64,000 nt of DNA, from the IMG/VR virus record IMGVR_UViG_3300017991_005548, positions 1-64,000 of that record. One strand, written 5' to 3'. Shown here in pieces: positions 7,052-25,673 of the stretch (positions are counted from its first letter, which is position 1; each line of letters begins with the position of its first letter). The translations under genes and the position numbers were made by a program. The notes beneath the pieces were generated by a model. The model saw nothing but the letters and a program-made list of their open reading frames with translations. It was not told where the DNA came from and made no database searches.

Positions 7052-8578
7052 TTAGTTACTTGAAGTCGATGATGAAGACTCATTATTAAACGATTCTGAG
7101 CTAGAACTCTTTACCATAGCATTTGTGCAATAGAACCTAACTGAATTGAATTCCTCTATAAAATCAAAATTAACAAGCGAATACCTAGCATCATCCCCCG
7201 ATGATAAGAAATCAAGATATGAAGCAACATATGTTGTTTCAAACGTACTGTTCCTTCTAGTCATTCTAGTTGTTATTCCTAAATTCTGAGATGTATCTAA
7301 CCTGTTCTTATTAATAACAAATGATACAACTGTTTGTGTTGATGGGATGACTGCGGAATCAAAATTATAAGTAAAATAGCCATTCCCATTATAATCTACA
7401 CTATTAGATGTGAATGTATCTGAACCACCCTCAATATATTCTACTTCAATAGTTAATGGCTTGAGACATTCTGTGTCATCCAAAGAACTTGAACTACTTG
7501 ATGACTCACTGTAGTTCTCTGAGCTAGTTGAAGAACTAGACTCTGAATCTAAAATAACAGCAGAACTGGACGAACTATTAGACTGGGAACTTTCGCTTGC
7601 AGAAGATTCGCTTTGAGAAGAACTTGATTCGGACTTAGACGAACTTGACTCAGATTCCGAACTACTTGACTCAGATTCCGAACTACTAGATTCACTCTCT
7701 GAACTACTTGACTCTGAACTCTCCGACTGAGAGCTTGAACTTTGCGAACTTTCAGACTGTGATGATTCAGACTTGGAACTTTCAGACTGTGATGATTCAG
7801 ACTGTGATGACTCTGACTGTGAACTTTCAGATTGACTACTTGAACTCTCTGATTGTGAACTTTCGCTTTGAGAACTCTCACTTGCAGAACTTTCAGACTC
7901 AGAACTTTCAGACTCACTTGCAGAACTTTCAGACTCAGAACTTGAGGATTCAGAATAGTCTTCAGAAGAGGATGAAGATTCGCTTTCTGAACTACTTGAT
8001 TCTGAGGCCGAAGATTCGCTTTCTGAACTACTTGATTCGCTATTGCCCTCAGATGATGTACTTGAACTTGAGTCTAAAGAGGAGCTTGAACTTGATGTAG
8101 TTGAAGAACTTGATGAAGATACGTTATTAAAACTCTCTGAAGAACTAGACTCATCTGATATCAACTCTTCACTCGAACTTGAAGAACTTGAATCATAAAC
8201 AACAATATAACCAGTTTCTTGTTCCCCAGAAGTAGGATCTCTTAACGGAATCCATTCGTTGTCAAATAAATTCGTTGTTACAGTTCTATATTTGGGTACA
8301 TACCTTTTGATTGGTGGGTTGGGCTTTGTGATGAAAGGATCAGCATCTCCAACCTGAATTCTCACGATTTCTATGATATACCAAGCAGGAGAAAAACAAT
8401 ATCCACCATACTCATAATGGAATATCAAAATGTAAACTTTAGGAGTAACTTCGCCCGTAACGATGTCTGTGTCTTTCTTGATGTAGAACGGCTGGCCATC
8501 ATGAGTTCCTCTTAACTCATAAATACCATTAGCGTTTTCATCGCCAAAATCAATAGCGATTAGCTGGGGGAAAGACAT
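7052..8578 (-). CDS. Ser-rich modular protein sharing its C-terminal domain with 3810..7037
   Basis: CLKPL...FTYN...NRLD...ITTRMT...CTNAMVKSSSSESFNN aligns with CLKQL...FTYN...NRID...ITARMT...CTNAMVKSSSSESFNN; SD GGAG upstream. Confidence 0.8.
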   Translation of the reverse strand: MSFPQLIAIDFGDENANGIYELRGTHDGQPFYIKKDTDIVTGEVTPKVYILIFHYEYGGYCFSPAWYIIEIVRIQVGDADPFITKPNPPIKRYVPKYRTVTTNLFDNEWIPLRDPTSGEQETGYIVVYDSSSSSSSEELISDESSSSESFNNVSSSSSSTTSSSSSSLDSSSSTSSEGNSESSSSESESSASESSSSESESSSSSEDYSESSSSESESSASESESSESESSASESSQSESSQSESSSSQSESSQSESSQSESSQSESSKSESSQSESSQSSSSQSESSESSSSESESSSSESESSSSESESSSSKSESSSSQSESSASESSQSNSSSSSAVILDSESSSSTSSENYSESSSSSSSLDDTECLKPLTIEVEYIEGGSDTFTSNSVDYNGNGYFTYNFDSAVIPSTQTVVSFVINKNRLDTSQNLGITTRMTRRNSTFETTYVASYLDFLSSGDDARYSLVNFDFIEEFNSVRFYCTNAMVKSSSSESFNNESSSSTSSN

Positions 8579-9915: not shown

Positions 9916-9942
9916 AAAAAAGCCCCCAAAAAATGGGGGCTT
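9916..9942 (-). terminator. Intrinsic terminator ending the Thr/Lys tRNA operon
   Basis: AAGCCCCCA-TTTTT-TGGGGGC followed by U6 on the minus strand. Confidence 0.8.
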
Positions 9943-9996: not shown

Positions 9997-10084
9997 TGGT
10001 GGAGCCGACAGGATTCGAACCTGCGCGGAGCTTGCGCTCTCTTGATTAAAAGTCAAGTACCTTCAGCCACTCGGTTACGACTCC
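9997..10084 (-). tRNA. tRNA-Lys(UUU) with a long variable arm (88 nt)
   Basis: GGAGTCG/CGGCTCC acceptor, CTTGA-CTTTTAA-TCAAG anticodon arm, GAGC-GCAA-GCTC variable hairpin, GCAGG-TTCGAAT-CCTGT T arm, ACCA end. Confidence 0.85.
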
Positions 10085-10086
10085 AA

Positions 10087-10962
10087 TTAAATTATTCCAT
10101 AACTTCTCGCCCATTTACGAATTGTATTACATGTTACCCCATATTTTTTACCAATAGCAACCCAAGTCATCTTATCTATCATGTCTTTTAGCTCTTCTTT
10201 AGATGGGCGATTCTGAACCTTACGACGACTTGGCAACTTACCATTACATGAAGTACATCTGGTGCTTCTATGCTCAATTGCTTTGTTGCAATCTACACAT
10301 CTATTTGTTTTTTCTTCCTCTAGCTTTTTAACATATTCCTCTATGGTTGTTTCAATTTTACAGTTTGCACATTTGTCCTTAATGACATTTTTGATCTGGG
10401 CAACAACCATTTTTCTATGCTTTTTGTCAAGCTTATTGTATTTAGACCACCTGATTCTATATACGAACCATCCATTGTCTTCCAAATATTTATTTCTACG
10501 CTTATCACTTTTTATTATTTTTTCATCGCAATAATGTTGCTCTCCATCGATTTCTATGTCTATTTTTCTTATTGGATCAGAGAAATCGAGTTGATATGTG
10601 CCAACTCTGTGATGGTATATTAACTCTATATTCTCATTTCTAAATAACTTCTCAAAATATTTTTCTGGGTACGACATTCCTTTGCTATGATGGTTAAGTA
10701 AATACGGGACTTTATCTGGATTTTCTTTAAGAAACTTTCTTCTTGCCTTACTAATCTTTTCTTTTGTTTTCTCTGACAGTTTTCTGGGTTTTAGTTTACA
10801 ACTTAATTTCATGGCACTCGATCTTTCTCTTGATACAAAATCTCCTCGTTTTCTGGCAGACGTAATTGCCGCCATACTAACTCCAAATTCCTCAATAACT
10901 TCTCTCCATGTATGTCCTTCGTCATAAAACTTCTGAATTTCAATCCAATTGTATCTAGGCAT
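10087..10962 (-). CDS. Free-standing putative homing endonuclease (DUF559/Vsr-like PD-(D/E)xK with HTH and Cys4 zinc modules)
   Basis: YQLDF...IDIEIDGEQH...DKRRNKYLEDNGWFVYRIRW; NUMOD-like LSEKTKEKISKA; CVDC...CTSC; lies between two complete tRNA genes. Confidence 0.75.
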   Translation of the reverse strand: MPRYNWIEIQKFYDEGHTWREVIEEFGVSMAAITSARKRGDFVSRERSSAMKLSCKLKPRKLSEKTKEKISKARRKFLKENPDKVPYLLNHHSKGMSYPEKYFEKLFRNENIELIYHHRVGTYQLDFSDPIRKIDIEIDGEQHYCDEKIIKSDKRRNKYLEDNGWFVYRIRWSKYNKLDKKHRKMVVAQIKNVIKDKCANCKIETTIEEYVKKLEEEKTNRCVDCNKAIEHRSTRCTSCNGKLPSRRKVQNRPSKEELKDMIDKMTWVAIGKKYGVTCNTIRKWARSYGII

Positions 10963-11051: not shown

Positions 11052-11128
11052 TGGTGGGCTGGGTGGGACTTGAACCCACGACCAACGGAGTAAGAATCCG
11101 CGACTCTATCCAACTGAGTTACCAACCC
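11052..11128 (-). tRNA. tRNA-Lys(CUU)
   Basis: Cloverleaf; anticodon arm GCGGA-TTCTTAC-TCCGT; ACCA end. Confidence 0.9.
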
Positions 11129-11133
11129 ATTTT

Positions 11134-11208
11134 TGGTGGACCTGGAGAATTTTGAAATCTCGACCAACGGATTAAAAGTCCGCGACTCTGCCTCTGAGTT
11201 ACAGGTCC
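11134..11208 (-). tRNA. tRNA-Lys(UUU)
   Basis: GGACCTG/CAGGTCC acceptor; GCGGA-CTTTTAA-TCCGT; atypical T arm GAGAT-TTCAAAA-TTCTC; ACCA end. Confidence 0.85.
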
Positions 11209-11263
11209 AAAGTGAGAGAGCATATCTACTTCGAAGACTTAACAATATGCTTTTAAACTCTCT

Positions 11264-11339
11264 TGGAGCCGCCTGACGGAATTGAACCGACATCCTCTGA
11301 GTACAAAACAGAGATAATAATCCTTTATACTAAGGCGGC
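11264..11339 (-). tRNA. tRNA-Thr(UGU)
   Basis: GCCGCCT/AGGCGGC acceptor; loop TTTGTAC closed by a U-U pair; TCCA end. Confidence 0.85.
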
Positions 11340-11345
11340 GTCATA

Positions 11346-11417
11346 AGCCCTTGCCCAGCAACGATCTGGGACTAATCCCTTACGAGGGGATAGTTCTGCC
11401 AATTAAACTACAAGGGC
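11346..11417 (-). tRNA. tRNA-Thr(CGU), CCA not encoded
   Basis: GCCCTTG/CAAGGGC acceptor; ATCCC-CTCGTAA-GGGAT; atypical T loop ATCGTTG. Confidence 0.75.
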
Positions 11418-11445
11418 ATCTTACTTAAATTTTCAAAGATCATTC

Positions 11446-11520
11446 TGGAGCATCCAATCGGACTCGAACCGATAACCCCCTCCTTACCATGGAGGAATTC
11501 TACCATTGAACTATGGATGC
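11446..11520 (-). tRNA. tRNA-Thr(GGU)
   Basis: GCATCCA/TGGATGC acceptor; CCTCC-ATGGTAA-GGAGG; TCCA end. Confidence 0.9.
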
Positions 11521-11734: not shown

Positions 11735-11762
11735 ATTATAAGCTATGTTTGGAGCTTTTCAA
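11735..11762 (-). promoter_or_regulatory. sigma70-type promoter of the Thr/Lys tRNA operon
   Basis: TTGAAA-N16-TATAAT followed by AGGGGTAAC. Confidence 0.75.
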
Positions 11763-13060: not shown

Positions 13061-13252
13061 TTATTTTTTGGATCGTTCCCTATTTAACGACTCTCTAAGG
13101 GAATAAGTGTCGAAGGCCATGACCGAAATCATTTCAAGCATTACTTGATCCAAAGGCTTATAGCCACCTTTATACAATTTTAGTAAACTCTCTACGTGAT
13201 AATTATGTTTGGCGATTCTCTCCAATTCCCCTAACAGCTTCCTCTTCCTCAT
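13061..13252 (-). CDS. Hypothetical protein
   Basis: 63 aa ORF overlapping the upstream gene. Confidence 0.5.
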   Translation of the reverse strand: MRKRKLLGELERIAKHNYHVESLLKLYKGGYKPLDQVMLEMISVMAFDTYSLRESLNRERSKK

Positions 13253-13652
13253 TTGTACCAGCCATTAGTTTAATCCTTTTCTTTGTTTTCTCGATAACGT
13301 CAGCAAACTTTGAACCCCCAAAAGGGCAATAGTGACATTCCATGTCTTTATTCCTCATTTCCCTCATCATAACCTTTGCTCCACGCAAATTTAATGAGTG
13401 AACAATGATAGATAATTTCTTATTTGGAGTCTCATGAAGTCGTCTTGCAACAGTAGCCCCAGTATTAAATTCATCACTATCTACATACTGTCTTCCCTCA
13501 AGATCATGATCTAGGAAAATATAGTCATACTTATTGGTATTTAGCCACTCCATTGCAAGGTCAACTTGGTCAGTAATGTCTAACTGACATGGTAAATGCT
13601 CTCTAAAAATTGCGATTCTTCTTGGGTCATCTTCCAGGATAAAAACTCTCAT
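13203..13652 (-). CDS. Receiver-fold protein of the cyclic-phosphate-processing receiver type
   Basis: ILEDD...IFLDHDL...TG...IIVHSLNxxG motif pattern. Confidence 0.65.
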   Translation of the reverse strand: MRVFILEDDPRRIAIFREHLPCQLDITDQVDLAMEWLNTNKYDYIFLDHDLEGRQYVDSDEFNTGATVARRLHETPNKKLSIIVHSLNLRGAKVMMREMRNKDMECHYCPFGGSKFADVIEKTKKRIKLMAGTNEEEEAVRGIGENRQT

Positions 13653-14523: not shown

Positions 14524-15510
14524 TTATGGTGGACTACTCTTATATGGATGTCCAGTTGGTAAACTTCCTTCTTGGCCCCACTTCCAAGCGAGATATCCCT
14601 CAACCTCTTGACGCTCTGTGTTTGTTAGTGCCTTTCTATAAACAAGAACCTCTGCATAATCTGCTTGCATGAAGTTACTATATCCCTCATTCAGTGCGCC
14701 CAAGGTAAGTGTAGAGCTATAGTTCGGAATAGATGTGCTAGTTTCTGTACTTGTTTTACTTAAGCTACCGTCCACATACAATTTTGATCTTTGAGAAGCG
14801 ATCAAAGATCCGTCAAATACTGTTTCCATCATATAAACCGTTCCACTACTGAAAGTTTGAGGATCGGAATCCCACCTATCCCCAATACCGTTAATATCGA
14901 TATATACATAACTATCATTCCAATAGAACATGCCATAAGCGTATTCCCCGAATTCGCCAAAACCAGTGCGCTTAGCGATAATGCCATCTGGATCTCCACT
15001 TAAAGTTGGTTTTAGCATTACCAATATTGTTAATCCTGAAGTTCCGTCTAAAGTGTCATCGTCTGGAACAACCAATATGTCTGAAACTCCATCAAATCTA
15101 ACGACATATTTTCCATCTAAGGCATTTGAGACATATGTGGGTTGATCAGTACCCGTACCTTGAGCCGCATGGTTTTCATTCCCTGATTTATCGTCCCATT
15201 GACTAACGAATCCTCCTGATTCAGTAATCGTATCAGAGTCGTCTGCATCAAGCCACAGAACTAAATTTGATATATCGGACGGCATAAATCCATCTGAACT
15301 CGAAGAACTACTTGAAGATACGTTGTTGAAACTTTCAGAGCTTTCTGAAGAACTTGATTCTAGAGCACACTCTAGACAAGAATCAAAAGTTCCACCTACT
15401 TCAGATGGATCAGTATCAACTGGGGCCAAGGTTTCTCCTACAAAAAGATAACATTCTCCATTTATTTTAATTGAAAGCCCTTGGTAATCTTGTAAAATCT
15501 TATCTGCCAT
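14524..15510 (-). CDS. Cys-module + poly-Ser + LamG/concanavalin-A-like domain (array copy 6)
   Basis: LWLDA...VSQWDDKSGN...FDG...EGYLAWKWG pattern typical of phage LamG-like fibre domains. Confidence 0.8.
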   Translation of the reverse strand: MADKILQDYQGLSIKINGECYLFVGETLAPVDTDPSEVGGTFDSCLECALESSSSESSESFNNVSSSSSSSSDGFMPSDISNLVLWLDADDSDTITESGGFVSQWDDKSGNENHAAQGTGTDQPTYVSNALDGKYVVRFDGVSDILVVPDDDTLDGTSGLTILVMLKPTLSGDPDGIIAKRTGFGEFGEYAYGMFYWNDSYVYIDINGIGDRWDSDPQTFSSGTVYMMETVFDGSLIASQRSKLYVDGSLSKTSTETSTSIPNYSSTLTLGALNEGYSNFMQADYAEVLVYRKALTNTERQEVEGYLAWKWGQEGSLPTGHPYKSSPP

Positions 15511-16469
15511 TATGGTGCCGCTCCTTTGTATGGATGTGTTAACGGTAAATTATCTTCTAGCCCCCATTTCCAAGCAAGATAGCCTTCTAATTTTTGTCTG
15601 GTGTCAGTTGTTATATCGTTCTCAATAACGATTATCTCGCAAATGTATCCATCCAAACGTTCGGTTGCTCTGTCAGCGACTCCCATTCCTTGAGAAGCGG
15701 TATTTGAAGTATTTCCTGCGGTTTGAAATGCTGTTGGCCCAGAAAGCGTTCCGTCATAAGTCGAATATACTTGTGCATTAGCCCAATCTGCAATAGAAAC
15801 AAACATATGTGGGTCTGTATCGGTTGTTTGCCAAAAAATTTCTAAATAGGAATCACTATCTAATCTTCTACCAGCAGTACCCAGGTCTCCAGCTTCAACC
15901 TGATGCTTTAATCTTGTGGAACCACTATTCTGATAAACCTCAAATAGAATATTTGTCCCAGTAATAACATCCTTCTTGTGAACAGTTAAAATCATAGCAG
16001 AAGGAACGTTTTGTAGATAAGCACCCGACCCGATAGCAATACTGTCATCTCCATCAAAGTCTATTACATTTAAGCCATTTTGCGTTGTGGCACCAGTAGT
16101 TGGCTGTTCGGCACCAGTTCCTTGAGTTAAATGATAATCATTTCCTGATTTATCATCCCATTGACTAACACTCCCTCCAGAATCAGTAATGGTATCTGTA
16201 TCAGCCGCATCATACCAACCTAGCAATGTCAATTCTGCTGGGGTGAAACCTCTACTTGATGAGCTACTTGATGAAGATACATTGTTAAAACTTTCAGAAC
16301 TTTCTGAAGAGCTAGATTCTAAAGCACACTCTAAACAAGAATCGTAAGTTCCACCTATCTCTGAAGGGTCAGTGTCAACTGGAGCAGTCGTTTCCCCTAC
16401 AAAAAGATAACATTCTCCATTTATCTTTATTGAAGGTCCCTGATATTGTTGTAAAATTTTATCTTCCAT
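15510..16469 (-). CDS. Cys-module + poly-Ser + LamG-like domain (copy 5)
   Basis: Same motif pattern; TAATG stop/start overlap. Confidence 0.8.
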   Translation of the reverse strand: MEDKILQQYQGPSIKINGECYLFVGETTAPVDTDPSEIGGTYDSCLECALESSSSESSESFNNVSSSSSSSSRGFTPAELTLLGWYDAADTDTITDSGGSVSQWDDKSGNDYHLTQGTGAEQPTTGATTQNGLNVIDFDGDDSIAIGSGAYLQNVPSAMILTVHKKDVITGTNILFEVYQNSGSTRLKHQVEAGDLGTAGRRLDSDSYLEIFWQTTDTDPHMFVSIADWANAQVYSTYDGTLSGPTAFQTAGNTSNTASQGMGVADRATERLDGYICEIIVIENDITTDTRQKLEGYLAWKWGLEDNLPLTHPYKGAAP

Positions 16470-17434
16470 TATGGTGGCGCTCCTTTATATGGATGATCTG
16501 ATGGTAAATTATCTTCTAGACTCCATTTCCAGGCCAAATAACCTTCGAGTTTTTGTCTTGTATCCAAAGTCTCGTCTTCAACAACTATTAACTCCCCAAT
16601 AGCTCCATCAAAACGTTTATTTCCTCCCCCAACATCTCCATCCCCGATCTCAAATAACTGAGTTGTATCATTGGGAATAGAAGTTGGGTTCGTTTGAACA
16701 GACTCAGCTTGCTCAACCCCATTCACAAAACATCTAGCATCTCCATATGTCCCACCCTGAGGTCTTGTCATTACAGTTATGGTAGGGGTACTAAGAGTTA
16801 CTGGTGTATATTTGTCATTACCATTATTATATCTCCAAGCCCATCCATCAGAACCAACAGACACCTTAATTGAATTTGTGACATTTCCACTAAAACCACA
16901 CCAACGATCATCTGAAGTTACACTACTATCAACCACTATGACTACGGCAATCATAACATCAGGGTTAGCTCCAAGACCAAGTCTTGAATTTATAGATAAT
17001 TCTTTTTGTGGGAAATCTAGAATATTTAACCCATTTATATTTCTTGTTCCTGTAATTGGTTGATCTGATCCGCTTCCTTGAGTTACATCATAATTATTCC
17101 CAGACTTGTCGTCCCATTGACTTACATTTCCACCTGAATCCGTTATGGTGTCAGAATCTGTTGCGTCCCACCAACCAACAGGACTGACATCTAATGGATT
17201 AAACCCTCTACTTGATGAAGAACTGCTAGAAGAAACATTATTAAAACTCTCCGAACTGTCTGAGGAACTAGAAGTACTTGATTCCAATGTACACTCAAGA
17301 CAAGAGTCAAAAACCCCACCTATTTCAGATGGATCTGCATTAATTGCTTCAGTTGTCTCTTCAACAAATAAATAGCATTGTCCATCTATCTTAACTGAAG
17401 CCCCCTGATAATCTTGAAATATCTTAACTGACAT
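16469..17434 (-). CDS. Cys-module + poly-Ser + LamG-like domain (copy 4)
   Basis: Start revised to MSVKIFQ at 17434 by paralog alignment and TAATG overlap. Confidence 0.8.
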   Translation of the reverse strand: MSVKIFQDYQGASVKIDGQCYLFVEETTEAINADPSEIGGVFDSCLECTLESSTSSSSDSSESFNNVSSSSSSSSRGFNPLDVSPVGWWDATDSDTITDSGGNVSQWDDKSGNNYDVTQGSGSDQPITGTRNINGLNILDFPQKELSINSRLGLGANPDVMIAVVIVVDSSVTSDDRWCGFSGNVTNSIKVSVGSDGWAWRYNNGNDKYTPVTLSTPTITVMTRPQGGTYGDARCFVNGVEQAESVQTNPTSIPNDTTQLFEIGDGDVGGGNKRFDGAIGELIVVEDETLDTRQKLEGYLAWKWSLEDNLPSDHPYKGAPP

Positions 17435-18315
17435 TATGGAACCCACTTATTATTCAAATAATTAATCACAGTATCTTGCTCAGAACTTGTCAAATCTTCG
17501 TTATAGAAAATCAATTCGCAAAGAGCCATTTTTAAATACCTAACATTCCCTGAGATAGGATCACCACCTATACGGATGTTGTTATAAACTGATCCTGCAA
17601 TTGTTGAACCTCTCTGAAACTTAGAAACTTGTATCTGATCAAAAGTAAAACTAGCTGATGCAACTCCATTAACTTCAAAATCACCATCTGTATAACAAAA
17701 ATCATTGGCATCATTTGTTGGTCTCCAAGCCGCAACAGTTCCACTAGCTAGTCGAATGTTACCTCTATCGCCTGCATTTGAGACCAAACCACTACAACAT
17801 CCAGTATTTGGCTGACCAGACTTTACAATGACTGCCGCAAAGACCCACTCCATATCTGTAACATTAATAGAATTCCTTTGCAGAAAATCATTTGAACCAT
17901 CAAAAGTTAAAGTGTTAAGATTATTTTGAGTTTCCAATTCTGTTTGAGGCTGATTCGACCCAGTTCCCTGAGTTACATGGAAATTGTTTCCTGATTTATC
18001 ATCCCATTGACTAACAAATCCACCTGAATCGGTTATAGTGTCCGTATCAGATGCGTCATACCACAAAGACAAGCCTGGGATATCATATGGGAAGAAGCCA
18101 CTTGATGACGAACTGGAAGAAGAAGTATTTCCTATGCTTTCAGAACTGTCTGAAGAACTTGATTCTAGAGCACACTCTAAACACGAACTAAAAGTCCCAC
18201 CTACCTCTGATGGATCGGTATCTACTGGAGCAGTTGTTTCTCCTACAAAAAGATAACACTCTCCGTTTATCTTAATTGAAGGACCTTGATATTCTTGTAA
18301 GATTTTATCATCCAT
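17434..18315 (-). CDS. Cys-module + poly-Ser + LamG-like domain (copy 3)
   Basis: Start revised to MDDKILQ at 18315; TAATG overlap. Confidence 0.8.
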   Translation of the reverse strand: MDDKILQEYQGPSIKINGECYLFVGETTAPVDTDPSEVGGTFSSCLECALESSSSDSSESIGNTSSSSSSSSGFFPYDIPGLSLWYDASDTDTITDSGGFVSQWDDKSGNNFHVTQGTGSNQPQTELETQNNLNTLTFDGSNDFLQRNSINVTDMEWVFAAVIVKSGQPNTGCCSGLVSNAGDRGNIRLASGTVAAWRPTNDANDFCYTDGDFEVNGVASASFTFDQIQVSKFQRGSTIAGSVYNNIRIGGDPISGNVRYLKMALCELIFYNEDLTSSEQDTVINYLNNKWVP

Positions 18316-19181
18316 TATATGCCCCACTTATCAGACAAATAATCTTCCACTTGTAATCTCTCACTAGTCGTTAAAGCTCTATTGTATATTATTATTTCTC
18401 CAATATCACCATTAAAAGTCTCCCCAATACGCAAACTATAATTAGATGGGTTGGCAAAATCATTTGTTGTTAAGTCGCTGAACTGGGAGGTTCCATTCAT
18501 CCAAACATTCTGGCCAACACCATCTTCATTCCTCATGGTAAAATAATTCCAGTTATTACCTCCAGTCCAAGACCACTGACACCTTCCTCCAGCACTCCAT
18601 TCTCCAAAATCGAAATACCCATCACCAGTACTCCACGTCAAGTGACATCCAATTCTATTTACTTCTCTTGGATTTGAAAAAATTGGATAGCTTGCTGTAG
18701 TTACGCTTCTTTTCTGAACGATGAACATTGTTATATCATCTTGAGGCCATGTATATGGATCTTTATCCATGTAATCTCCCCCATCCCATCTAATAATATT
18801 ATTGCCATTTTGAACATTTGTTTGATAGGTTGGTTGTAACGAACCAGTCCCTTGAGTAACATCATTGTCATTACCTGATTTGTCATCCCATTGACTAACA
18901 CTGCCAGAGGATTCTGTTATGGTATTAGAATCAGCCGCGTCAAGCCACAATTGAATGTCTGCAATATCATATGGGAAGAAACCACTCGAACTGGAAGAAG
19001 AACTTGAATCCAACGAACTTGATGAACTTTCTAGAGTACACTCCAAACAAGAATCATAGGTCCCTCCAATCTCAGATGGGTCAGCATTAATACTTTCAGT
19101 TGTTTCCTCAACAAATATATAACACTGCCCATCGATTTTAACAGAAAAGCCTTGATAATTTTGAAATATCTTAACTGACAT
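18315..19181 (-). CDS. Cys-module + poly-Ser + LamG-like domain (copy 2)
   Basis: Start revised to MSVKIFQ at 19181; TGATG overlap. Confidence 0.8.
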   Translation of the reverse strand: MSVKIFQNYQGFSVKIDGQCYIFVEETTESINADPSEIGGTYDSCLECTLESSSSSLDSSSSSSSSGFFPYDIADIQLWLDAADSNTITESSGSVSQWDDKSGNDNDVTQGTGSLQPTYQTNVQNGNNIIRWDGGDYMDKDPYTWPQDDITMFIVQKRSVTTASYPIFSNPREVNRIGCHLTWSTGDGYFDFGEWSAGGRCQWSWTGGNNWNYFTMRNEDGVGQNVWMNGTSQFSDLTTNDFANPSNYSLRIGETFNGDIGEIIIYNRALTTSERLQVEDYLSDKWGI

Positions 19182-20104
19182 CAGATTCCCCACTTATCCA
19201 TTAAATAATTTTCAACAGTAATTCTTTCACCATCTGTTAAATCTCTATCATAAATAACAACTTCTCCACAATAGAACCTGGCATAAGCATTGTTCCCTCG
19301 ATTAACTCCTAATCTAATTCTACTTGAAAAAAGACTAAAAGTATCATTTCTAGTTGAGCCTGTTTGACTACCGTTTAAAAAGGCTTTTTGTTGAGATCCT
19401 GTATTCCAAGCTGTAAAAAGATATCTAGTATTATTAACTGGACTTCCATATGTTATCTGCCTTTGAGTTGTGGTAGCATCATGATATCTATAGTCCATAT
19501 TAGCTGACCCTGCAAAACTTAACTGTAATGCTCCAGCAAAATTAAATACATTATGACTACTATATATACCATCATTAGTGTCAAATGGAGAGAACGCAGT
19601 AACAGCCATAAAAATTGTAAATGCTCCTGATGGACTTGCAGATAAGTTTTCCATATCATCATCAACTCCATCAAAAAACATACAGCCAAGGCCATTAAAA
19701 CCAGAAGAAAGATATTGAGGTTGTTTGGTTCCAGTCCCTTGAGTTAAATCCCACCCTCCAGTCCATTTGTCATCAATTTGGGAAATAGATCCTGCTGACT
19801 CTGTAATCGTATTAGAATCTGATGCATCATACCAAGCATAAAGGTTGTTGATGTCATATGGGTAGAAACCACTTGAGGAAGAGCTACTGGAAGAAACATT
19901 ATTGAAACTCTCAGAACTTTCCGAAGAACTAGAAGTACTTGAAGAACTAGACTCTAATTCACATTGAAGACAAGAGTCGTAAATTCCACCAATCTCAGAT
20001 GGGTCAGCATTAATTGCTTCGGTAGTTTCCTCAACGAATATATAACACTGCCCATCGATTTTAACAGAAGAGCCTTGGTAATCTTGAAATATCTTGACTG
20101 ACAT
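19181..20104 (-). CDS. Cys-module + poly-Ser + LamG-like domain (copy 1)
   Basis: Same N-terminal module; AWYDA...FDG...ENYLMDKWG. Confidence 0.8.
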   Translation of the reverse strand: MSVKIFQDYQGSSVKIDGQCYIFVEETTEAINADPSEIGGIYDSCLQCELESSSSSTSSSSESSESFNNVSSSSSSSSGFYPYDINNLYAWYDASDSNTITESAGSISQIDDKWTGGWDLTQGTGTKQPQYLSSGFNGLGCMFFDGVDDDMENLSASPSGAFTIFMAVTAFSPFDTNDGIYSSHNVFNFAGALQLSFAGSANMDYRYHDATTTQRQITYGSPVNNTRYLFTAWNTGSQQKAFLNGSQTGSTRNDTFSLFSSRIRLGVNRGNNAYARFYCGEVVIYDRDLTDGERITVENYLMDKWGI

Positions 20105-25591: not shown

Positions 25592-25673
25592 TGGTATGGG
25601 GGGTGGGACTTGAACCCACAGAAATTCACTTGTTTATAAGACAAGCCGCTTAACCAAATTTGCGTACCCCCAC
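25592..25673 (-). tRNA. tRNA-Ile(UAU)
   Basis: CTTGT-CTTATAA-ACAAG anticodon arm; GTGGG-TTCAAGT-CCCAC; ACCA end; 9-nt variable region. Confidence 0.8.

Follow-up and report, generated by a model that had tools for sequence, protein, structure and literature searches.

A phage tRNA-Lys(UUU) gene with an extra variable arm

Long variable arms in bacterial tRNAs are, by the textbook rule, confined to Ser, Leu, Tyr and Sec, so why does a giant marine phage carry a tRNA with a lysine anticodon built on such a body, and which amino acid does it deliver? The gene lies in the first 64 kb (the window, 64,000 nucleotides) of IMG/VR virus record IMGVR_UViG_3300017991_005548, a single contig of 296,327 bp with about 38% G+C and genes almost all on the minus strand. 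A sequence-only reading had described an 88-nt tRNA-Lys(UUU) with A73, a GAGC-GCAA-GCTC variable hairpin and a Ser/Tyr-like D arm, and proposed either a Lys tRNA reshaped to evade anticodon nucleases or a tRNA charged by SerRS or LeuRS that would misread AAA. The described observation is correct in every detail, with the additions that the gene lies on the minus strand and that it is not a unique oddity. The interpretation is partly supported, given that the Lys identity is backed by comparative data, nuclease evasion remains an inference that fits known biology, and charging by SerRS or LeuRS is disfavoured.

We first evaluated whether the gene is real. ARAGORN finds 11 tRNA genes in the window and 46 in the record, and calls tRNA-Lys(ttt), 88 nt, at 9997-10084 on the minus strand, while the Rfam tRNA model RF00005 matches 10000-10084 (-) at 62.5 bits (E 3.6e-11) against a gathering score of 29. 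The 5' strand of the acceptor stem, GGAGUCG (10078-10084), pairs with CGGCUCC (10001-10007) over 7 bp including G1-C72 and G2-C71, with a single U-G at pair 5-68, and is followed by U8 and A9. The D arm (10059-10075; ACCGAGTGGCTGAAGGT) is of class II type, with a 3-bp stem ACC/GGU and an 11-nt loop GAGUGGCUGAA that contains G15, G18, G19, U20a and G20b. The anticodon arm (10041-10057) reads CUUGA-CUUUUAA-UCAAG, with the anticodon UUU at 10048-10050 and UAAUCA at positions 36-41. The variable region (10025-10040) is 16 nt long and consists of A, a 4-bp stem GAGC/GCUC capped by the GNRA tetraloop GCAA, and three unpaired bases CGC. Hence, the body departs from a canonical class I tRNA-Lys, which has a 4-5-nt variable loop and a 4-bp D stem. 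The T arm GCAGG-UUCGAAU-CCUGU (10008-10024), the discriminator A73 (10000) and an encoded CCA (9997-9999) complete the gene, and the 7-bp acceptor with a 5-bp T stem is the standard 7/5 branch.

A 291-aa ORF at 10087-10962 (-), whose stop lies 2 nt before the tRNA, has a DUF559/Vsr-like endonuclease fold plus HTH domains by profile matches (Pfam DUF559 at 30.7 bits, MTES_1575, HTH_23; PHROG HNH endonuclease) and looks like a homing endonuclease. It separates the long-armed gene from a canonical cluster at 11052-11520 (-) that comprises Thr(GGU), Thr(CGU), Thr(UGU), a 75-nt Lys(UUU) at 11134-11208, which is the normal-length counterpart of the long-armed gene, and a 77-nt Lys(CUU). Consensus scans alone give a promoter-like site TTGAAA-16-TATAAT (11 of 12 matches) at 11735-11762 (-) upstream of the cluster and a terminator-like hairpin followed by a T run at 9920-9942 (-), 55 nt downstream of the 3' end of the tRNA, which probably ends the transcription unit.

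The same record holds at least three further long-armed tRNAs with class I anticodons: Glu(UUC), 91 nt, at 70056-70146; Ile(GAU), 91 nt, at 90835-90925; and Cys(GCA), 88 nt with U73, at 105941-106028. Each lies near a normal-length tRNA with the same anticodon. A 476-kb IMG/VR contig is 99.98% identical to the record from its position 212,354 onward, and its extra 212 kb looks like phage as well, with PARP, NAD synthase and few recognisable genes. This part adds long-armed Gly(UCC), 87 nt, Met(CAU), 89 nt, and Asn(GUU), 91 nt, bringing the total to seven. The long-armed Gly and Asn genes each sit beside a normal-length counterpart, whereas the only other CAU gene found lies about 57 kb from the long-armed Met. 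The RtcB protein of the phage also occurs on a 524,692-bp contig, so the true genome is probably 510-525 kb and the record is a fragment. Contigs from three marine sediment or seawater studies hold the locus and are identical across the tRNA, and no RNA run was found to contain it, so these data show neither expression nor natural variation. A search with a neighbouring protein (window 7052-8578) returned only the same phage, an INPHARED search of the 3-kb region matched only canonical tRNAs, and a Terminase_6N search found nothing.

To test whether such tRNAs are common, we scanned viral contigs in IMG/VR with the pattern CTTTTAAN{18,30}GGTTCGAATCC, which requires a Lys(UUU) anticodon loop followed by 18-30 bases and a fixed T loop. 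At least 115 stretches matched, in which ARAGORN made 106 calls of long-armed tRNA-Lys(UUU), 82-94 nt long, of which 87 were distinct after clean-up. An alignment of 85 of them gives a cloverleaf in which 18 of 20 pairs show compensatory changes and through which the D-loop consensus AGYGGYCGAA runs. Their variable regions fold at -2 kcal/mol or lower in 68% of cases, against 12% of shuffles, and 44 of 74 hairpin loops are GNRA. With the variable arm and anticodon loop removed, the nearest relatives of the target are these phage Lys tRNAs (74-81% identity) and not its own Ser, Tyr, Leu or short Lys tRNAs, although this comparison is somewhat inflated by the fixed T loop of the pattern. Mean D-arm identity between tRNA categories did not separate the classes. 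Cultured phages have members too: Xanthomonas phage XacN1 has an 89-nt Lys(CUU), Caulobacter phage CcrBL9 and relatives have an 87-nt Lys(CUU), and about 100 T5-like Escherichia and Salmonella phages, plus Aeromonas phages PX29 and Ah1, have an 87-nt Thr(UGU), all annotated simply as tRNA-Lys or tRNA-Thr.

In bacteria the form is rare. The same pattern in 185,579 species genomes matched at least 120 stretches, but only 11 of these loci contain a long-armed Lys tRNA, of which five lie in phage-like arrays of 10-17 tRNAs and one, from Marinobacter, is an assembly artefact with NN and a duplicated 10-mer. The other 109 loci are chance matches, plus some tRNAs that ARAGORN reads with other anticodons. 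Judged by the ratio of real to chance hits, we estimate the density per base to be roughly 100 times higher in viral contigs than in prokaryote genomes. Three Actinomycetota MAGs carry a near-identical long-armed Lys(UUU), which in the one whose neighbours were scanned lies among housekeeping-type genes, and they show no canonical Lys(UUU) by pattern. None of 400 other genomes sampled from that phylum has the pattern. Hence, a long-armed tRNA-Lys is not routine in any bacterial group examined, and the condition that the sequence-only reading had named as refuting it, a routine occurrence in the host phylum, does not hold.

Several lines of evidence point to lysine as the amino acid, although charging itself is inferred. 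Bacterial Lys identity is the anticodon triplet plus A73 (PMC9976931), and both are present. Across about 250 long-armed phage tRNAs the discriminator follows the rule of each anticodon: Asn G 10/12, Trp G 8/8, Asp(GUC) G 11/11, Cys U 4/4, Gly U 3/4, His C 3/3, Met A 8/9, Thr U or A, and Lys A 67/90, with 22 of the 90 long-armed Lys(UUU) having U73 instead. All 14 long-armed Thr(UGU) sequences inspected begin G1, C2. A single class II synthetase charging them all would predict one uniform discriminator. In 35 of 52 phage arrays of 10 or more tRNAs, several of which cover 15-18 amino acids, the long-armed gene is the only Lys(UUU) gene in the stretch fetched. In the RtcB gene of the phage, 12 of the 14 AAA codons at conserved columns align with Lys, which on this one conserved gene rejects a genome-wide reassignment of AAA. 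The standard code already gives 86% coverage by long ORFs, and opening TAG adds little despite a CUA suppressor tRNA. No LysRS-type (PF00152; Lys/Asp/Asn) or SerRS-type (PF00587; Ser/Thr/Pro) gene that might pair with the long-armed tRNAs was found in the record or in the 476-kb contig.

The body does not match Ser or Leu tRNAs. The target has A73, whereas 43 of 55 phage Ser tRNAs across the four Ser anticodons in the comparison set have G73. Its 4-bp variable stem is followed by three unpaired bases, whereas phage Ser tRNAs average 5.2 bp (bacterial SerRS substrates have about 5-7 bp) and 93 of 96 have 0-2 unpaired 3' bases, a spacing that sets the orientation of the arm. Leu tRNAs have 1-2 unpaired bases and Tyr tRNAs mostly 3, against 3-4 in 70 of 74 long Lys and 30 of 32 long Thr. 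Of the Leu elements A73, A15-U48, G18, G19 and A20a (PMC9976931), the target has A73, G18 and G19, but positions 15/48 are G/C and 20a is U. Compared with the Tyr set of A73, G34, U35 and a Tyr-type arm, it has A73, U35 and a Tyr-like arm geometry, but U at positions 34 and 36. The remark in the sequence-only reading that the genome is extremely rich in Ser-repeat proteins has no bearing on this, given that those repeats are read with ordinary Ser codons.

Canonical bacterial class II tRNAs, above all tRNA-Tyr, share with the target a 3-bp D stem, a long D loop of GAGYGG...GAAGG type and a tetraloop-capped variable hairpin, and the short stem, about three unpaired 3' bases and A73 are most like tRNA-Tyr. 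However, the anticodon is UUU rather than GUA, and the anticodon and T arms are close to those of E. coli tRNA-Lys(UUU). Nematode nev-tRNAs and eukaryotic noncanonical V-arm tRNAs (PMC3333845; Hamashima et al. 2016, as cited in PMC5389517) are likewise class II bodies carrying anticodons of class I amino acids, but they are eukaryotic and leucine-type, with identity elements that do not match the anticodon, whereas in the phage family the discriminator and acceptor elements match it. Bacterial and phage allo-tRNAs and (8/4) tRNA-Ser/His (PMC5389517) are unusual long-armed tRNAs from metagenomes and phage tRNA clusters, some with non-Ser anticodons, but allo-tRNAs have an 8/4 or 9/3 acceptor/T branch, a tRNA-Sec-like D arm and Ser identity (G73 or U73). 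Full-text searches, and term searches within the main PARIS, OLD, phage-tRNA and noncanonical-tRNA papers, found no description of long-armed Lys or Thr tRNAs in phages, although only open papers were covered and a prior description elsewhere cannot be excluded.

A possible reason for the arm comes from host defence. [quoted passage not shown] UUU is the target anticodon of PrrC as well, and P2-OLD targets Thr(UGU), from which phage Thr tRNAs rescue cells (PMC12445682). The known phage escape tRNAs, namely T5 tRNA-Lys(UUU), Thr(UGU) and Asn(GUU) against AriB and phage tRNA-Thr(UGU) against P2-OLD (PMC11464382, PMC12409363, PMC12445682, PMC10264068), are, like the target, phage-encoded copies of tRNAs that host nucleases destroy, with the same anticodons; they are presumed to be charged by the host synthetase and often sit among homing endonuclease genes in tRNA clusters. 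They are described as normal class I molecules protected by a few substitutions in the anticodon stem-loop or D loop, or by a shorter anticodon stem, and term searches found no mention of a variable arm in those papers. T5 itself has the normal 75-nt Thr(UGU), so the published T5 rescue data do not cover long-armed tRNAs. Among tRNAs that share a locus with a long Lys, Thr(UGU) is long-armed in 32% and Asn(GUU) in 23%, against 0/42 Asp and 0/40 Phe, and the larger contig encodes RtcB next to a tRNA cluster, an RNA ligase and a CCA-adding-type enzyme. However, these frequencies are conditional on a long Lys being present and the scans fixed the T loop, so they are biased samples. The anticodon bias is not clean either, as Ile(UAU), Trp, Cys, Met and Val also appear long-armed, and a control scan for Asp(GUC), expected to be empty, found 11 genuine long-armed tRNA-Asp, which weakens a strict link to nuclease-target anticodons. 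The target also keeps the exact AriB-sensitive sequence instead of the changes (U39A or A41C) that protect the T5 tRNA-Lys, so any protection would have to come from shape alone.

We consider the gene most likely to be a functional lysine tRNA on a class II-shaped body, from a widespread, phage-enriched family of class I tRNAs that carry a variable arm, covers Lys, Thr, Asn, Met, Trp, Cys, Ile, Val, Gly, Glu, His and Asp, and in this view keeps the identity elements of each anticodon. The tRNA would be transcribed with the neighbouring cluster, charged by the host LysRS, which reads the anticodon and A73, and used to decode AAA/AAG as lysine. The extra arm, a hairpin of conserved geometry whose sequence varies freely, appears to be under selection, and our preferred reason for it is steric. 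The arm projects beside the 3' strand of the anticodon stem, directly after position 43, and comes with a remodelled D loop and elbow, so nucleases such as AriB might fail to dock or cut while LysRS, EF-Tu and the ribosome still accept the tRNA. What the analysis shows is the tRNA gene, its family and, from RtcB, the meaning of AAA in this genome; transcription with the cluster, charging with lysine, decoding by this particular tRNA and the steric block are inferred. That it is a real tRNA gene of this family is close to certain and charging with lysine is likely, whereas nuclease evasion is tentative, and the explanation as a whole is about as likely as not. Some charging by TyrRS cannot be excluded from sequence, and class II synthetases such as LysRS approach the tRNA from the variable-loop side, so a long arm might hinder LysRS.

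Other readings are each less likely. A mistranslating tRNA, charged by TyrRS, SerRS or LeuRS, which depend little or not at all on the anticodon, and reading AAA partly as Tyr, Ser or Leu in the manner of nev-tRNAs or allo-tRNAs, would fit the long arm, the Ser/Tyr-type D arm, G1-C72 and G2-C71 as in bacterial tRNA-Ser (PMC9976931) and the Tyr-compatible features, and the canonical Lys(UUU) 1 kb away means that the long-armed copy is not needed for normal decoding in this genome. It is nevertheless improbable given the discriminators and acceptor elements across the family, the arm geometry unlike Ser and Leu, the sole Lys(UUU) genes in most arrays and the alignment of AAA with Lys. The same redundancy and the retained UAAUCA would suit a non-translating decoy or sponge for anticodon nucleases, or another regulatory or priming role, but this is equally improbable given cloverleaf covariation that extends to the acceptor stem, the encoded CCA and kept discriminator, and the sole Lys(UUU) genes in 35 of 52 arrays and in three MAGs.

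Slightly less doubtful, but still unlikely, is that the arm is a handle for a phage factor, such as a modification or repair enzyme or a nuclease that destroys host class I tRNAs and spares arm-tagged phage copies. The systematic pairing of long and short tRNAs for Lys, Glu, Ile, Cys, Gly and Asn, the RtcB, RNA ligase and CCA-adding-type genes and the strong phage enrichment agree with it, but no candidate arm-binding protein was identified, long-armed tRNAs occur in very different phages, including T5-like phages of about 110 kb, with no obvious shared accessory gene examined here, and three bacterial MAGs appear to use one as a chromosomal gene. A tolerated variant without a special role, spread by descent and by exchange of tRNA cassettes helped by homing endonucleases, is about as unlikely. 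The abutting endonuclease-like ORF, the scatter over many anticodons including Asp, and the short, class I-like Leu tRNAs common in the same loci, which suggest generally relaxed body constraints in phage tRNAs, speak for it. However, the arm keeps a defined geometry (one unpaired base, 3-4 bp, a tetraloop, then 3-4 unpaired bases) and GNRA loops across highly diverged sequences, which argues for purifying selection on the hairpin, and the density is far higher in viral contigs.

What differs from the described escape tRNAs is a whole extra arm and a class II D arm in place of point changes at the cut site. Structured extra arms on Lys, Thr, Asn and other class I tRNAs turn out to be common in phages, including easily handled T5-like phages of E. 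coli and Salmonella and the jumbo phages XacN1 and CcrBL9, and tools that score by isotype model may label such genes Ser, Tyr or ‘undetermined’. If these tRNAs are charged by their cognate synthetases, they show that LysRS, ThrRS, AsnRS and others tolerate a class II body, which is useful for tRNA engineering and orthogonal tRNA design. A bolder possibility, which we hold only tentatively, is that phages have a second, general way to protect their translation from tRNA-targeting immunity, in which class I tRNAs are rebuilt on a Tyr-like class II scaffold that keeps the cognate identity elements, so that host synthetase and ribosome still use the tRNA while shape-reading nucleases cannot; a giant phage such as this one would then carry a whole parallel long-armed set next to the normal set. 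If the arm blocks defence nucleases, it is a new counter-defence principle in the arms race around PARIS, OLD, PrrC, retron and Schlafen-type tRNases, and it would also help explain why large phages carry duplicated tRNA sets.

Beyond the long-armed tRNA-Lys, the same phage carries six more long-armed tRNAs with class I anticodons. Three of these lie outside the window in the 296-kb virus record (G000), namely Glu(UUC) of 91 nt (G000:70056-70146), Ile(GAU) of 91 nt (G000:90835-90925) and Cys(GCA) of 88 nt (G000:105941-106028), and three lie in loci L010 and L012 of the larger 476-kb IMG/VR contig (G002), namely Gly(UCC) of 87 nt (L010:1814-1900), Met(CAU) of 89 nt (L010:2927-3015) and Asn(GUU) of 91 nt (L012:1179-1269). 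All but Met have a normal-length tRNA of the same anticodon nearby. An 82-nt tRNA-Ile(UAU) on the minus strand (window 25592-25673) has an 8-nt variable loop, and in the phage loci 4 of 12 Ile(UAU) genes are long-armed. A UAU anticodon is an unusual way to read AUA in bacteria. The reverse oddity is also seen, in that tRNA-Leu(UAG) of 77 nt and tRNA-Leu(UAA) of 76 nt (G000:104966-105042 and 105495-105570) are without a long variable arm, and in the phage loci (viral loci L014-L126) approximately 40–55% of Leu(UAG/UAA/CAA) genes are short. These could be class II tRNAs reshaped the other way.

Other tRNA genes of the record are unusual in different respects. Three genes with Rfam tRNA scores of 35–47 bits are found at G000:69658-69785, 103429-103562 and 103580-103698 (L487:459-586, L488:230-363 and L488:381-499 in the extracted loci). 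Two of them carry 50–64 nt in place of the 7-nt anticodon loop, and the remaining one, of 134 nt, is read by ARAGORN as having a 42-nt intron. The inserts of the former two share a hairpin followed by UUC(C)AGCAAC and are too short for group I introns. A 75-nt tRNA at G000:197395-197469 has the anticodon CUA and is an amber suppressor, labelled ‘Pyl’ by ARAGORN. However, the standard code already gives 86% long-ORF coverage, and opening TAG adds little.

Around the tRNA genes, a homing-endonuclease-like ORF with a DUF559/Vsr fold plus two HTH domains (window 10087-10962, minus strand) is wedged between the long-armed Lys gene and the canonical tRNA cluster, and its stop lies 2 nt from the tRNA. 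We also found an RNA-repair flavoured gene set (window 13203-13652, minus strand; L007:8413-9681; G002:98705-99301; G000:201114-201527), which consists of a cREC-REC ‘cyclic-phosphate processing receiver’ domain protein near the tRNA cluster, RtcB beside the Gln/Asn tRNA cluster, an RNA ligase (PF09414) and a 680-aa CCA-adding-type nucleotidyltransferase. Farther along the window, six tandem ORFs of approximately 290–330 aa lie in a row on the minus strand (window 14524-20104). Two of the four that were scanned have a Laminin_G_3 (concanavalin-like) domain, so this may be a paralogous array.

The record itself is cut at an arbitrary point. The 476-kb contig continues 212 kb upstream of the record's first position (G002:1-212353 against G000:1) with phage-like genes and more tRNAs, and the RtcB protein sits on a contig of 524,692 bp. 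The genome is probably approximately 510–525 kb, although both records are labelled ‘provirus’. In the part of the 476-kb contig that is presumed to be phage, a 441-aa protein (L006:17466-18791) has WGR, PARP regulatory and PARP catalytic domains, a eukaryote-like poly(ADP-ribose) polymerase architecture.

Outside this phage, a near-identical long-armed tRNA-Lys(UUU) of 85–87 nt is present in three Actinomycetota MAGs (L192:5179-5263, L204:2977-3061 and L205:1157-1243), and in L192, the one locus scanned, it lies among housekeeping-type genes (PPK2, DsbA). No canonical Lys(UUU) was found by pattern in these three MAGs, and 0 of 400 other genomes sampled from the phylum have the long-armed pattern. 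In cultured phages, T5-like coliphages and Salmonella phages carry an 87-nt long-armed tRNA-Thr(UGU) at the position where T5 has a 75-nt one, as in Escherichia phage JLBYU40 (L252:1489-1575) and approximately 100 other records. It is annotated plainly as tRNA-Thr, and these phages provide a ready experimental system.
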